A DNA stretch of 63,301 bases, filler included, from Hyphochytrium catenoides (Eukaryota > Protista > Hyphochytriomycota), in assembly GCA_900088475.1 (NCBI GenBank). It is 10 parts of 10 records of this genome, joined end to end, with 100 filler letters (N's around TTAATTAATTAA, not from the genome) between each part and the next. Parts side by side here need not be neighbours in the genome. Positions count along the whole stretch, not along the records: positions 52,990 to 58,899 come from FLMG01001084.1; 9 more parts are not named here. One strand, 5' to 3'. Positions within the stretch are counted from its first letter, which is position 1; the number at the start of each line of letters is the position of its first letter. The notes under the pieces were generated by a model. It was not told the DNA's origin. It worked only from the letters and a program-made list of their open reading frames with translations, and did not search any database. The translations under genes were made by a program, and so were the position numbers. Below, piece by piece: positions 52,990 through 60,559 of this stretch.

Positions 52990-53061
52990 TTGTCTTCACG
53001 GTGATCGGATGTGGGCTGATGGGAAGGTCAGAAGCCTTTCTTCTCTTCTCTTTGTCTCTGG

Positions 53062-53095
<34 letters not shown>

Positions 53096-54894
53096 TCCCT
53101 TTCTTCAAAGGCCATCTTACCGCCGCCGCTCATTCTCTTCTCTACTCTTCCCTCTCCCCTCGCCGCGTGTTGCTCTCATGACAGCCGGATAGCCCTCGAG
53201 GCGGCTCTCTTAGGCTTTGACGTGGTGGTGGTGGACACGGACGAAGCAGTTATCGGAGGAGTGAGCCCCCTCAGTGCTTCCAATGTTCCCTCGATCCCTC
53301 TGATTCTTACTCTTACAGCTCCTTACTTGGCCCAATCACTCTCTCTCTCTCTCCCTTTCTCTCTCTCCACATCGCGTTTGTTGGTCTCTCTCTGCGTCTC
53401 TCTCTCTCCTTTCTCTTTGTTTCTCACTCTCTTTTTCTCTCTGTCTCTCTCTCTCTCCCTTCTTCACCCCCCCTTCTCGCTCTTCTTCTCTCCGCGTCGT
53501 TCTCTTTTCTATCTCTCTCCCCTGCTCTCTCTTCGGACCCGTCCCTAAGCTCTTTGTTTACCCCCGTCTCCTCTCCTCGCTGTTCCATGGCTGCGTTGCG
53601 TGGCTCTGCAGGCCTTGGACACAATGGAAAGCCTGGCGCTGGAACTCGTACAGGGCGGACTACTAGCGGACGCAAGGAAAAGAGAAGCACTGCGTCGGAC
53701 AAGGACTGCTAGATCTCTAGAGGAGGCAGTCAGAGACGCTACTCTCGTCCTAGAAGCTGTAAGTCTTCTTCTCTTTCAAGCAGATGCATTCCTCTCTCTC
53801 CCTCAGCTTTCAAGCTACTTGTCTTCTTTACTCACAGTCTTTCCACCTTGTGTCGAGTTACCGCCGCTCCAAAGCCTTTCTCTCTCTTGCAATCTCTCTC
53901 GTTTGGCATGCATTTTTTGTCCTCGTCACCTCGGTCTCAGGTGTTCATTCTTCTCAAGTTGGACTCTCTTTTGATCGGGAGGAGAGAGAATCTCTTTGAA
54001 TTGGAATCATTGGATCTCTCCTACAACCTCTCGGTCTACTGGACTCTTTCAGCTATCTGTGTCCCTCTTCTGCTGACATTAATCTGCCACGGTGTCTCCT
54101 GGATCTCCTCGTTTTCCAATGTCCTCTCCGCCCTATCCGCTTTTGGCTTGCCCCTTCTCTCTTTCTTCTCTCTCCTCTTTTTCGCGCTGACTCCTCCGCT
54201 TCTCTCTTTTTATGATACGCAGGCTCCTGAAGATTTGGCGCTCAAACAATGGATCTTCAGAGCTGTCGAGGACAGTGCACCGTTGAGCGCAATCTTTGCC
54301 TCGAACTCCATGTCCATTTCGATAGAAGACATAGCGTAAGGACACTTTCGTATGCACTAGCGCCTCGCGCCGCCTCTCCCTTTCGCTTTCTCTCCTCCCG
54401 TTCTCTCCTTTATGACGGAGTATAGAATTGACATCCAACGTTCTTCTCTCTCTCGGCCCGGAAAACTCTCTCTCTCTCTCTCCCTCTCTCTCTCCTTCTC
54501 TCCCTCTCCCCTTCTCCCCTTCTTTCGCCATCTCTCTGCGCACTTCTCTCTCTCCTCTTCTTCGCCTTCCCTTCGTGCTCCTGTATAGGCTTGGCATGCG
54601 GCACGGTGATCGTCTGGTAGGACTGCGGTTCCTCTTCCCCGTGCTGCTCATTCCAGAGGTGGTACTCACTCTATGGCGGAGCGCAGCACAAAGTGCTGTG
54701 CAGAGAGTAAGGGCAGACGCACACTTAGTCCTTCCATCACAGTCATGAGCCATACTTCTTTGCCCTTTTCTCTCCCTCTCTTCTTCTCTTTCTCTGTTCC
54801 CCTCCCTTTCTTTCTATCTAACTATTTAACTATCCATAGAGCTACCCATCTCTCTCTCTCTCTTTTAGCGAGGTGGTATTCTCCCTTTCTTCTT

Positions 54895-54930
<36 letters not shown>

Positions 54931-55808
54931 CCTCTTCGTCTGCACTTCCCTCTTCGTTCTCGTCCACGTACGTCTCTCCCTACACTTATGACCTTTAGTG
55001 TCTCCTTTTCTCTCTCTCTCTCCGCTCTCTCTGTTTATGTCTTCAATCCTGTGGCTCTCCAGCCTTCCTCACTACCCTGTCTTGGTCTCTGTGACTTCGC
55101 AGTGTCTTGCGGTGCTCTCATTCATGAACAAGGCACACGTGGGCCCTAATCGTGGGATGATAAGCCAGAGAGAAGCAGGAGACAAGCAAAGAGGTGCGTG
55201 AGAAGCTTTAACAAAGTGAGCGATAGCTGAGAAAGAGAGAACTCAGGCCGATGAAACCACACACCAAAGAAAGAGGCCACAGGAAGACCTAGGAGCCTTT
55301 TGTCCACTTCTAAACTCTCTGTTTTTCTCTCTCCCTCCCCTGCCCAGCGGAAGCGCAACGAAGAGCTTTAGGTAAGTCTAGCTCTTTATGATATTGTTAA
55401 TGTGGGCCATGGTCATCTCTTCTTCCTGTGAATGCAGCTTGCGTTTGCTCTCTTTGGGTCTGATGTCATCTCACCCCAGCCTTCTCTTTTTGACTGATCT
55501 TCTCATCTCTCTCTCTCTCTCTGGCTTGCAATCCTGTGTAGAGACCTATGAAGAGCGAATTCTGCGGCATCGCGTGCTGGTCGATGCCCTTTCTTATTCT
55601 CCCTCCATCTTGTCCTTCTCCTCTACCGTGGCAGACGACTCCTGCATCGTCTGCTATGAGAGGCCCAGCAACACCCGACTTCTGCCTTGTCGTCACCTCG
55701 CATTGTGCCCACAGGTGAACTGTGATGGAATGGGGAAAGTGCTGGAGGAAGTCTCCCAAATGCCTTAGAGCACTTTAGCCGTCGATTAGTCGCTCTCTCT
55801 TTCTCTCC

Positions 55809-55880
<72 letters not shown>

Positions 55881-56021
55881 GGGCCTTCTTCTAACGCTTC
55901 TCTCTGTTATTGCCGCGTCTGATCCCTTCTTCAGTGCACTCTTCACCTTATAACAAGCTCGGGGCCTTCGCTCTGCCCTCTCTGCCGAGAACCCATCCAG
56001 AGAATTTCTCTCTCTCGATAG
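52990..56021 (+). CDS. 3-hydroxyacyl-CoA dehydrogenase NAD-binding domain fused to a C-terminal C3HC4 RING finger; 5'-truncated
   Basis: VIGCGLMG (GxGxxG), VVVVD, EAAPEDLALKQ, FASNSM, GLRFLFP, then phase-compatible linker exons and CIVC-x11-CRH-x3-CPQC-x12-CPLCR. Stop at 56019-56021. Confidence 0.85.
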
Positions 56022-56722
56022 GACGGCCTCTCTCTTCATGTTCATTGTTGCTCGCCTAATGACTGGAAGAGAGCTGCCATTGCTCTTGTAGAGGGCATTG
56101 AGGTACGCTTACGTCGTTGTCAAGGTCAATGGGATATAAAGGCTATTCCGAAGCCCACTGGGAAGGAGAATGGATAGTGGGAAGAGAATAGAGGAAGAGA
56201 CTCAGAGGGATGGGGAACCCTGATAACCAACACGAGGAAGATAACTGAAGGTCTGAGGCTCCACCAAGAGACAGAAAGTGCTCGCTGATTGACTGAGAGC
56301 GAGGAATGAGGCTCATGTGGCGGTCTATTGGAACTAGATCATCTCCCCCAGGGCGAGAGGGAAAGGAAAACGACAGTAGGGAGAGAGAGGTGATGCACAG
56401 AGAGTGAGAGGAAAGGGCATGTAGGTACGACTGGGCATCTGATGTCCTTGAATATTAACTTTACAGGGCTGCAGAGTCATCAGCAGCTTGTGGGCAAGCT
56501 ACTTTACTGGCTGTTGGAAGGATTGGTGCACAAGGCCACGAGCAGACTTTTCAATCGGTCAATGCTCTCCCCTTCTGGGTCCACTCCTCTCTTCACTCAC
56601 GGCTTCTCCTTCCTTTCCCACCAGCCTGAGTGTCATCGCTCTCTCTCCATCCCTCAGCTCATCTCCGCACCTCCTCACTCGTTATCGTTCTCTCCGCCTC
56701 CTCTTCATTGCGAGCGGCGAGG

Positions 56723-57172
56723 TCAGGCAGTGGCAGTGATGAGCGAGGTTAGAGCTGCGGCACTGAAAGGCACGTTCTTTCCCTTCGCGCCGTCCTCTCT
56801 TCTTTTTGTTCTCTCCCCTGGTATCTTTCCCCTTTCTTCGGCGATCGCAGTGACTCTTCCAACGCAGATCGTGTTGCCGTCCCAGAGAAGCAGCTTAGAG
56901 CCGACCTCTAGATATTCTGCACAGTAGACAAAGGAGAAGTGACAGAGATGCGGTCGCCTACCGACGCAATAACCAAGGAGACACGTGGGAGAAGAACGGA
57001 GAAAGAAGGAAAGAGAAAAAGAAAGAAGAGAGAGAGCACAGACTTCGTCAAGAACTATCAGCTACGCATAAAGATGCTCCCTCCCCCAAAAAGCTCTCTT
57101 TCTCTGTCCCTCTCTCTCTCTCTCTCGCGCGCGCGCGTGCTCTGTCTGTCTGTCTGTCTCTCTCTCACTCAC

Positions 57173-57208
<36 letters not shown>

Positions 57209-58790
57209 AATGTCCCTTTGCTAGAGCATTGAAAGCCTGTTTCTTTTGGATCTAACAGAAAGCGAGACTCTCTCCGAATGGTCGAGACCTTGACTCCATA
57301 TAACCTCCTAGGCTGAGACTCTACTCTTGTTCTCCCAGAAAAGCTTCTCCATCCTCTTCCCTCTCCTGCCCTGAAACTCTTTCTTTTTCTCATGCTTCTC
57401 CTCGGCTTCGTTTACCTGTGGCCAGAGCTTTCAGGCTTCGTCTTGCTGACCAGCCTCACGACTTGCCGTATGTTCCTGCTGTAGAGCACAGGCTCATAGC
57501 CGGCGTCCAAGCCTTCGTCCTCATCCCCTAAGAAGTCTACCTCCGCCTCAAAGTCTAGCACTAGAGGCGGAGCCTTGAACAGAAAGTGAAAAAAGGAAGA
57601 GAGACATGAAAGGACGAGTGCCGGCTGGTCAGTCAGGAAGGAGCTACATAGAGATAAGCAGAGAGAGAGAGAGAGGAACAAGTGACGCCCACTCACCTTG
57701 TCCTGTTGCTTCATCAGCACCATCCCCTTCCTCAGCACCAACCTTCCTCCTTCTTCCTCCTCGTTCTCCTCCGCTCCGCTTTCATCCTTCTCAAGCGCTA
57801 GCTGGAGCGTTCCGCTCTGCTTGGGCAAGAGATCTGTCGCTTGCGCGCCTTTGACCCTAATGTCTTCTATGCGAGCTGGCACGAACTTTCCTAGTTTCGT
57901 AGGCCCTACCACGACTTTGTCGTCTACTCTCAGCTGGCCCCTAAAGCAATAGAAATGACTTAAGTCAGGCACATAACCTTAGCAGAGCTAAAGAGAAGGG
58001 GGAGGGAGAGAAGAGAGAGAGAGAGAGAGTGAGAAAGAAAGAAAGAGGGAGAGAGAGAGACAGTATGGGGATCGCATGTCGGACACTTTTCACTTTCCTT
58101 GGTTTCAGGAAGGGAAAGATAATGCAATGTTAGCGAGAGACATAGAAGAGGTTAAGAGAGAGAAAAAGAAGAGAGAGGCAGGAACTACCTCGACATAATG
58201 CCTCCGACGACGGTGTCTTCCTCTTCGTTCCGGTACGCCTCTAGGATGCTGAAGGCCGGAGAGTTTGATCGTTCTTCATTTCCTATTGATGGTGCTTCTT
58301 GCTGTCTCTCCTTATGAGCCTGTGGAGCGAGAACAGCAGCAAAGCGGATGAGACAGAGTGACACCGTCGCCGAGCTCGGGGAGGTTGCTAGGCACGCGTT
58401 ACAGGGAAGAGAAGAGAGAAGTAGCGCCCAAAAGGAAGAGAGAGGTGGGATGAAGATCCGAAAAGTCATCTGTGCTTACATTTGGCTGAAGAGATCGCAG
58501 GAAGCTCTGCAGGACAGCCATCCTAAAATGAAAGAGAGAAGTTATTTACTTGAGCCGCAGGAACGAATAGAGCGCGAAGCAAGAGAGAGAAAGAAGGAAT
58601 AAGAAAGAACGAATGGAGAGAGATATTGAGAAGGGGAGGAGGCTAGAGAAGCTAGTGATTGAAGAGGTTATACCCTGCGCCGGTGACGCTTGAAACTGAG
58701 AAGAGAGGAAGAGCCGTCCGTAGACTCTCTGGTACTGCTTGATCTACCAGCGCCACACGTCGGGGACATCCCAAACTCTATAAATCAAGA
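56723..58790 (-). CDS. GTPBP1/GTPBP2-like translational GTPase (end of G domain, domains II and III); 5'-truncated
   Basis: PLFSVSSVTGAG.AVLQSFLRSL, TVVGG..RGQLRVDDKVVVGP..GKFVP, LRKGMVL, FEAEV, YEPVLYSRNIRQ, HFSFVYCAEYLEVGSKLLLWDGNTICVGRVT. Confidence 0.85.
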
Positions 58791-58850
58791 TGATTAAGTG
58801 CGGTGAATGCTGCGAAGACAGGACGACAGGATAGGAAAGAGGAGGGGGGA

Positions 58851-58881
<31 letters not shown>

Positions 58882-60559
58882 AGAGAGAAAGAGAGAGAGN
58901 NNNNNNNNNNNNNNNNNNNNNNNNNNNNNNNNNNNNNNNNNNNTTAATTAATTAANNNNNNNNNNNNNNNNNNNNNNNNNNNNNNNNNNNNNNNNNNNNG
59001 GGAAGGGAGGGAGGGAGGGAGGGTGACGACGGTCATCACCCCTGCGAGGCCGGAGCCAGTCATTCCTGTATCAGGAGAAAACGATTCTTGGGTTTGGAAG
59101 ATACCACGAGTTAGTATTAACAACCTATAGGAGTAAAGAGCGATGGGTGTGAGGTTGTGGTTGTTTGCTGATGAGTTAGTGGGTATGTCTATTGAGAACA
59201 ACGCGGGTGGGGGCAACTGCTTCTTACTTATTTATGGTGGGGATGAAGCTTGGGGGCGAAAACCCCCCCCAACCATGATATGGGTTAGGGGTGTCATCAC
59301 AGAGACTAAACGACAGACCCACGCATCTGTACGGGAGGGCAAACCTCTAACATATATACCTACATCCCTGGGTCATACACACATCCTTCCAACATGTTGC
59401 CTGACCGTTTATCTAGGGTTTGGTAGTCAACCCCAGAGCGTTTTATACAGCGTTCGATTGGCTGGTTCAGCTCCCTGGTCAACCGGACTATCCAATCAGA
59501 ATAGCTCACATGTGCTGTGGTAGATGGTGATTGGCTCAGGATCTTAGGCGGGGTAGGTTTCACCCGCTCCCGTGTTCTCTTCACCACCAGTCAATCGGCA
59601 AAGAGGGAGGAAAGTACTCCTCCGACGGGGGGACATAACCTAATCTTCTTACCCAGATCTAGAGATTTAGCTCTTCGTGGGTTCTGTGTCCACCGGGAGG
59701 GGTTTCCGCCCCCTTCACCCTTGTAATATCAAGGCCGCTCTGCCTCTTTCCGCTATTTATCTCTTAGGGTTTCCATCGTCCTTTTCAATACTCTTTTTTG
59801 GGACGAAAGGAAGAGAATCTAATCTGGTGCATCCTCGCAGGGCTGTTATCTCACGCCCATTGGGGTGCAGAAAGGTCCATAGAAAAGCCCGCGAGGGCCT
59901 GCTAAGACACTGCAGTAGCCAACCGTTCATTCTGATCGATGGGGGTATATCCTGCACCACGTGTCACCAAGGCAATGCACCGTTCCCACCCACATGCGCT
60001 TGGCCAGTGATAGGACTGCCATGTAAAACTGCCTACCCATCATGCCGTCACACACCACAAGTAATGTGAGGTTTCTCTCGAAGACATTCACCCCCGCATT
60101 GGTGGTCATGAGGCTTGGGGTCAATGTGGGCGCAGGAGGGCGGGCGAAGAGAGAGACGAAGAGAAAGAGAGAGCGAGTAAGCGGGAAGGACAATGAGAAA
60201 GGCTACTTTACGTGGTAGAAGTGGCTTTTGGACTGTACCTCTCTCTCTCTCCGTCCTGACAAAAGAGCTGAGGACAACCAAGGGTGGGACGTCTCATGGC
60301 CAAATGTTACACATGCGGCTTATGTTTAGAAATGAAGTGACAGAGATAACAATCTCTATGGCTAAGGGCGGCTAAGGATTGGCGAATGTGGTAACTTTCT
60401 GCTACACAAACCGGCAAAACTAGACATTAACCGCTTCGCTTGGCTTTGAACTGGTATGGGAAAGGAAAAAACCTAATAATATGCCGCACTAGCCCTTGTG
60501 ACTGTTTGTGCCACTTTGCACCCGTCAACTCCTTTCTGTGCTCTCTCTCTCTCTCTCTT

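Follow-up and report, generated by a model that had tools for sequence, protein, structure and literature searches.

A gene at the beginning of the part taken from the Hyphochytrium catenoides record FLMG01001084.1, a piece of eukaryotic DNA that occupies positions 52990-58899 of the window (the whole 63,301-nucleotide stretch analysed here, filler included), probably encodes a RING-type ubiquitin ligase built on an inactivated metabolic enzyme domain. With moderate confidence, we read it as one gene of at least nine exons, in which a dead dehydrogenase domain of the 3HCDH_N family is joined by a linker to a C3HC4 RING finger. The product would be a probable E3 ubiquitin ligase equipped with a module that binds nicotinamide adenine dinucleotide, NAD(H), and/or a protein partner. 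The predicted exon structure, the identities of the two domains, the loss of the catalytic residues, the absence of the C-terminal dehydrogenase domain and the intactness of the RING all have in silico support.

On the plus strand, positions 52992-56021 resolve into nine exons separated by eight GT-AG introns of 154-464 nt. The exons are in consistent phase and yield 864 nt in frame, giving a spliced product of 287 residues with no stop codon or frameshift across the nine exons. The 5' end of the gene is truncated at the edge of the piece (52990), the frame being open from the first base and the N-terminus missing, and the gene ends at a TAG stop codon (56019-56021). The piece has a G+C content of 51% and contains numerous (CT)n runs; the exons have 55% G+C and 50% pyrimidine, and the introns have 73% pyrimidine on the sense strand. 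A phase-consistent exon chain running from a Rossmann domain through a linker to a RING had been proposed in a first-pass annotation made from the sequence alone, and this chain is borne out in silico. All the motifs named there are present, GCGLMG, VVVVDTDE, EAAPEDLALK, SNSM, GLRFLFP...PEVV and a full C3HC4 RING being confirmed, and only the junction coordinates had to be moved by a few bases, with exon 5 ending at 54706 instead of 54708 and exon 6 at 55193 instead of 55199.

Pfam was scanned exon by exon. The exons matched two families only, 3HCDH_N and zf-C3HC4_3, collinear with the order of the profiles, and the families of exon 4 (3HCDH_N) and exon 8 (zf-C3HC4_3) came up again in a feature search of the ESM Atlas. 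Exon 4 (54223..54335), which carries EAAPEDLALK and ASNSMS, matched 3HCDH_N positions 87-122 (27 bits, cut-off 22; E 5e-6), and exon 3 (53612..53758), from the middle of the Rossmann domain, matched positions 40-85 (E 0.059). The spliced product shared 34% identity with E. coli PaaH over residues 4-170 (E 1e-15). A protein search with PaaH returned only enterobacterial PaaH sequences of 77-100% identity, which was too narrow a set, and diverse references were drawn from plasmids. Besides E. coli PaaH, FadB and FadJ, the resulting profile of 13 3-hydroxyacyl-CoA dehydrogenases (HADHs) contained ten plasmid-borne enzymes from bacteria and archaea. Against this profile the spliced product scored 101.7 bits (E 2e-33, Z=1) over residues 3-177 and profile positions 5-178, and the match of the predicted protein is far beyond chance. 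The alignment contains a lone one-residue insertion, within exon 3, and zero indels at the five exon junctions that it crosses.

The two features that mark 3HCDH_N membership, a GxGxxG motif and an acidic residue after strand beta-2, are found as GCGLMG and VVVVD. The first lies in the partial exon 1 (52992..53026, cut at 52990; donor GT at 53027), which supplies strand beta-1 with VIGCGLMG at positions 5-14 of the HADH profile. The second lies in exon 2 (53185..53260), which supplies helix alpha-A and strand beta-2 with the acidic residue at its end (VVVVDTDE) and joins exon 1 without an indel relative to PaaH or the profile. Exon 5 (54589..54706), which encodes the degenerate active-site segment GLRFLFPVLLIPEVV, scored 3.4 bits on its own against the HADH profile, a value reached by none of 500 shuffles. 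Exons 5 and 6 together scored 11.7 bits, compared with 3.5±1.2 bits when exon 6 was shuffled, and none of 1000 such shuffles reached 11.7. This significant gain from exon 6 (55103..55193), which holds the end of the domain (MNKAHVG, then GMISQR instead of GFxVNR), argues that exons 1 to 6, as modelled, encode a complete 3HCDH_N Rossmann domain and that the splice sites are right. With exon 4 above the Pfam cut-off and the custom profile matched as described, the earlier recognition of a hydroxyacyl-CoA dehydrogenase-type Rossmann domain holds, the family being 3HCDH_N.

At the other end of the protein, exons 8 and 9 encode all eight zinc ligands of a RING (C-x2-C-x11-C-x-H-x3-C-x2-C-x13-C-x2-C), and the eight ligand columns align with those of four database RINGs. 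Exon 8 (55542..55714) specifies a charged helical linker, a Ser-rich stretch and the first RING half (C-x2-C-x11-C-x-H-x3-C), and matched zf-C3HC4_3 positions 2-27 with 34.4 bits (cut-off 27; E 1.9e-8). Exon 9 (55935..56021) specifies the second half (C-x13-C-x2-C) and the tail that places the RING 11 residues from the C-terminus, and matched positions 29-49 with 16 bits; intron 8 splits the domain between ligands 5 and 6, at profile position 27/29. In characterised RINGs, a hydrophobic residue after the first ligand, a Pro after the seventh and a basic residue after the eighth contact E2~ubiquitin. The residues read at these positions are Ile (C-I-V-C), Pro (C-P-L-C) and Arg (C-R). With all eight ligands, a score above the Pfam cut-off and active-looking E2-contact residues, the complete C3HC4 RING of the first reading is retained, and a RING E3 ubiquitin ligase is the most likely predicted function of the protein.

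The nearest solved relatives of the RING are those of CGRRF1, MGRN1, AMFR, cIAP1, MEX3C and RNF123. Like the C-terminal zf-C3HC4_3 E3 ligases (MGRN1, CGRRF1, cIAP1/XIAP, AMFR, MEX3C), it combines the ligand spacing and the LLPCRHL core with a site at the extreme C-terminus and with Ile, Pro and a basic residue at the E2~ubiquitin contact positions. However, its second loop is longer (13 residues), its tail is without an aromatic residue, and its N-terminal partner is a metabolic-enzyme fold that those ligases lack. One database match of exon 8 (P0010) is MGRN1-like by eye.

Catalytic residues and the missing C-terminal domain

Columns of the HADH alignment were considered conserved when identical in at least 11 of the 13 reference enzymes. 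The dinucleotide-binding half of the spliced product keeps 12 of its 14 conserved columns, among them those of GxGxMG, I-A, A and G, both Glu and the Lys within EA..E....K, and the Asn within S-N-T-S, whereas the catalytic half keeps only 4 of 12 (Fisher p 0.014). The two positions altered in the NAD half are the Gly after GxGxxG, which is Arg here, and a conserved Asp, which is Thr. The Ser, His and Glu that are invariant in 13 of 13 references correspond to Met116, Arg137 and Val149: Ser of N-T-S is changed to Met, His of GLHFFNP to Arg and Glu of LVEV to Val, the last two within exon 5. Alignments of exon 4 to entries of the PDB (diketoreductase, Hbd and human TFP-alpha) concur on the position of the Ser. 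The MAFFT alignment additionally places Phe at the Asn of FFNP, also in exon 5, and GMISQR under GFIVNR, with Gln at the Asn. A Glu is present two residues ahead of the usual Glu column; because BLAST aligns it to that column only by means of a 2-residue gap, the catalytic Glu is counted as lost or at best displaced in the predicted protein. The replacement of Ser, His and Glu next to well-kept dinucleotide-binding positions had been pointed out in the first reading and is confirmed by these counts.

This combination of retained binding residues and lost catalytic residues is as would be expected if binding had been maintained after catalysis was lost. The selective retention of the dinucleotide-binding positions argues for continuing selection on the putative NAD(H) binding.

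The first-pass annotation had also placed the RING where active enzymes carry their dimerisation domain. In a tblastn search with full-length PaaH, no 3HCDH_C exon was found on either strand of the piece, residues 190-475 giving noise only, and exon 8 had no match to PF00725 in Pfam. The conserved C-domain columns are all absent from the spliced product, and together with the complete C-terminal RING these results agree with the proposed swap. A candidate remnant of 3HCDH_C (EAxRxALE, VDAL..P) in exon 7 and the first part of exon 8 was rejected because the similarity is not significant. Since the C domain is lost, the HADH dimer interface is gone as well, and it may be speculated that the C-terminal RING supplies dimerisation instead.

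Compared with HADHs that consist of 3HCDH_N and 3HCDH_C (PaaH, FadB, FadJ, human HADH, Hbd), the Rossmann domain shows homology from end to end and has retained GxGxxG, the acidic residue that follows beta-2, the EA..E....K motif and the Asn within S-N-T-S. By contrast, the catalytic Ser, His and Glu as well as the Asn residues of FFNP and GFxVNR are changed, and the entire C-terminal dimerisation and substrate domain is missing, with the linker and the RING in its place. This suggests that a 3HCDH_N domain can survive the loss of the C domain, its obligatory partner.

Predicted function and the search for relatives

In the mechanism that we propose, the N-terminal part would be a complete 3HCDH_N Rossmann domain that keeps the dinucleotide signature and has lost the catalytic Ser, His and Glu, and a charged, Ser-rich linker of about 50 residues would occupy the place of the 3HCDH_C domain. 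The C-terminal C3HC4 RING, of the MGRN1/CGRRF1/IAP kind, would recruit E2~ubiquitin. The dead dehydrogenase domain, for its part, would have no catalytic role but would bind NAD(H), a protein partner or both, and set target choice or activity. NAD(H) binding, E3 activity and a coupling between the two modules are thus predicted properties, and an NAD(H)-responsive E3 would be the best single reading of the gene. The sequence had at first been read as that of a candidate E3 sensing NAD(H) or acyl-CoA. The pseudoenzyme with its NAD signature and its RING has held up, but the acyl-CoA part is weakened. In HADHs of known structure, acyl-CoA occupies the cleft between the two domains, and its binding site is completed by the C domain; acyl-CoA sensing is less likely because the latter is missing.

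Direct reading of a small metabolite is known for only a few E3 ligases. CtBP and NMRAL1/HSCARG are NAD(P)H-binding pseudo-dehydrogenase regulators, and RNF146 is a ligand-gated RING E3 whose WWE domain binds iso-ADP-ribose. The protein described here may resemble them by logic only, in that a module for a nucleotide or dinucleotide ligand, without normal catalysis, controls a regulatory output (in RNF146 the RING itself). There is no sequence relationship, as those modules are a D-2-hydroxyacid dehydrogenase, a short-chain dehydrogenase/reductase or a WWE domain versus 3HCDH_N here, and the comparison is a proposal about how the protein works, not about membership. We tentatively extend it to a class of metabolite-gated E3 ligases, an idea that we put forward as a long shot: a beta-oxidation dehydrogenase domain without catalysis would bind NAD+/NADH and be wired to a RING, so that the redox state would set ubiquitination, and a RING-less isoform with intron 6 retained might compete. 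If true, this would be a compact natural conversion of an enzyme into a sensor, a RING ligase with a dead NAD(H)-binding domain of fatty-acid oxidation as its only other folded module, and it would tie protein turnover to redox or energy state in a way open to direct test.

Two sets of observations weigh against the NAD(H)-binding fusion ligase, the first concerning its N-terminal module and its relatives, the second the link between its halves. NAD(H) binding by the putative pseudo-dehydrogenase domain is read from motifs only. Neither exon 7 nor the initial 30 residues encoded by exon 8 showed detectable similarity to anything, including HADH C-domains. Database queries were single exons, which would miss orthologues with a diverged linker, so that the null results are weak. 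Among 1.84 billion representative proteins, exon 8 gave 18 matches, all at the level of the RING and none of the 18 with 3HCDH_N. A word-indexed protein search with exon 4, covering proteins of 114-364 aa, gave no candidate; a metagenome scan with exon 8 found no relative, and neither did scans of viral and prokaryote contigs. No orthologue conserving the His-to-Arg change, and no other protein with this architecture, was found in these protein and contig searches with single-exon queries. Full-text searching of the literature gave no description of a 3HCDH_N-RING architecture, which newly combines two domains that are each known. The one metagenome match of exon 3 (L002:3468-3590) was dismissed as chance, as it lies antisense to a bacterial open reading frame of 608 residues that is threonine dehydratase-like by eye.

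The lack of relatives of the linker/RING exon, both among the representative proteins and in the metagenome, viral and prokaryote contig scans, is what recommends an alternative in which the fusion is real but the dehydrogenase-like domain binds no nucleotide. It would then be a protein-interaction or scaffold module, or the gene would be a young, lineage-restricted product of exon shuffling with little or no selected function; the Arg after GxGxxG and the Thr at the conserved Asp in the NAD half point the same way. We regard this as unlikely, if still credible, since all nine exons are intact with zero stops or frameshifts, conserved residues are kept in the dinucleotide half and lost in the catalytic half, and orthologues with a divergent linker would have escaped the single-exon queries.

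The exon 6 to exon 8 link and the remaining alternatives

The weak point of the gene model is how exon 6 connects to exon 8, and a look-up of sequencing runs listed no RNA run for this sequence. The stretch from residue 177 (exon 6), where HADH similarity stops, to the RING at residue 234 consists of the rest of exon 6, exon 7 and 32 codons of exon 8. Exon 7 (55348..55371) is a micro-exon of 24 nt (AEAQRRAL) flanked by AG and GT, in phase 1 to 1. The end of exon 6 and the start of exon 8 are both in phase 1, so that exon 7 can be skipped and the frame is kept with or without it. Exon 8 contains no in-frame ATG, and hence no in-frame Met, ahead of the RING. The sole upstream in-frame ATG, at 55388, lies within sequence of 67% pyrimidine (55388-55541) that holds a (CT)n microsatellite and looks like an intron. 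Furthermore, the pyrimidine skew of the sense strand extends without a break from 52990 as far as about 56100, flipping shortly after the stop codon. These features are consistent with exons 6 to 8 being spliced together.

The second set of contrary observations concerns intron 6 (55194..55347). It alone is not pyrimidine-rich, with 48% C+T versus 68-81% in the other seven introns, and its first 100 nt are purine-rich and resemble the stretch after the stop at 56021. If it were retained, an in-frame TGA at 55199-55201 would end the protein two codons past exon 6. The oddity of this intron and the early TGA mean that a RING-less short product, or two genes, must be considered. Intron 6 might also act as an alternative 3' end and so give rise to a RING-less short isoform.

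An arrangement with two products would have the dehydrogenase-like gene end at this TGA as a stand-alone, truncated 3HCDH_N protein, with the RING belonging to a separate small gene or to a minor isoform only. The base composition of intron 6 and the in-frame stop directly past exon 6 speak for it, as does the finding that no HADH-derived sequence is detectable past exon 6. A RING gene would start at ATG 55388, placing about 52 hydrophobic residues ahead of the RING; the open reading frame from this ATG does read in frame into exon 8, and small stand-alone zf-C3HC4_3 proteins exist. However, only 187 bp separate the TGA from ATG 55388, and these would have to accommodate a 3' untranslated region, a spacer, a promoter and a 5' untranslated region; the interval between the neighbouring convergent genes, by comparison, is about 1.3 kb. 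In addition, the pyrimidine-rich, (CT)n-bearing sequence of 55388-55541 is intron-like and unlikely as coding sequence, and exons 7 and 8 are bordered by canonical GT/AG sites with a polypyrimidine tract and are in matching phase. We consider two products rather improbable; if the fusion were not transcribed as a single unit, the locus would be an ordinary degenerate HADH fragment beside a small RING gene.

That the protein is instead a still-active dehydrogenase with other catalytic residues, merely carrying a RING, is very improbable: its Rossmann core is intact, a Glu stands two positions before the usual one and Arg takes the place of His, but the Ser, His and Glu that never vary among the references are all replaced, the Asn residues of FFNP and GFxVNR are also changed, and the C domain that completes the substrate site is absent.

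Neighbouring sequence

No Rfam family was found in the whole piece. A convergent multi-exon gene lies on the minus strand at about 57311-58800, its 5' part running off the piece. One of its open reading frames gave a weak match to EF-Tu domain 2 (E 0.0029), and the gene resembles, by eye, the C-terminal half of a GTPBP1-like translational GTPase (FSVSSVTGAG, LRKGMVL, FEAEV); a single exon of it compared with the database and the PDB gave nothing useful. The convergent stop codons of the two genes are separated by about 1.3 kb (56022-57310). Within this interval lie a plus-strand open reading frame of 161 codons (56442-56927) that matches nothing on record and, further on, a long imperfect (CT)n array (57094-57206). 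In exact look-ups, none of four open reading frames of the window was on record.

Across the piece, TRF (Tandem Repeats Finder) reported 14 rows, mostly (CT)n/(GA)n. The strand asymmetry follows transcription: the introns of the plus-strand gene are 68-81% pyrimidine in the sense direction, and those of the minus-strand gene are GA-rich on the plus strand, that is, CT-rich in sense. Just downstream of the stop codons of both genes, the sequence is purine-rich in the sense direction.

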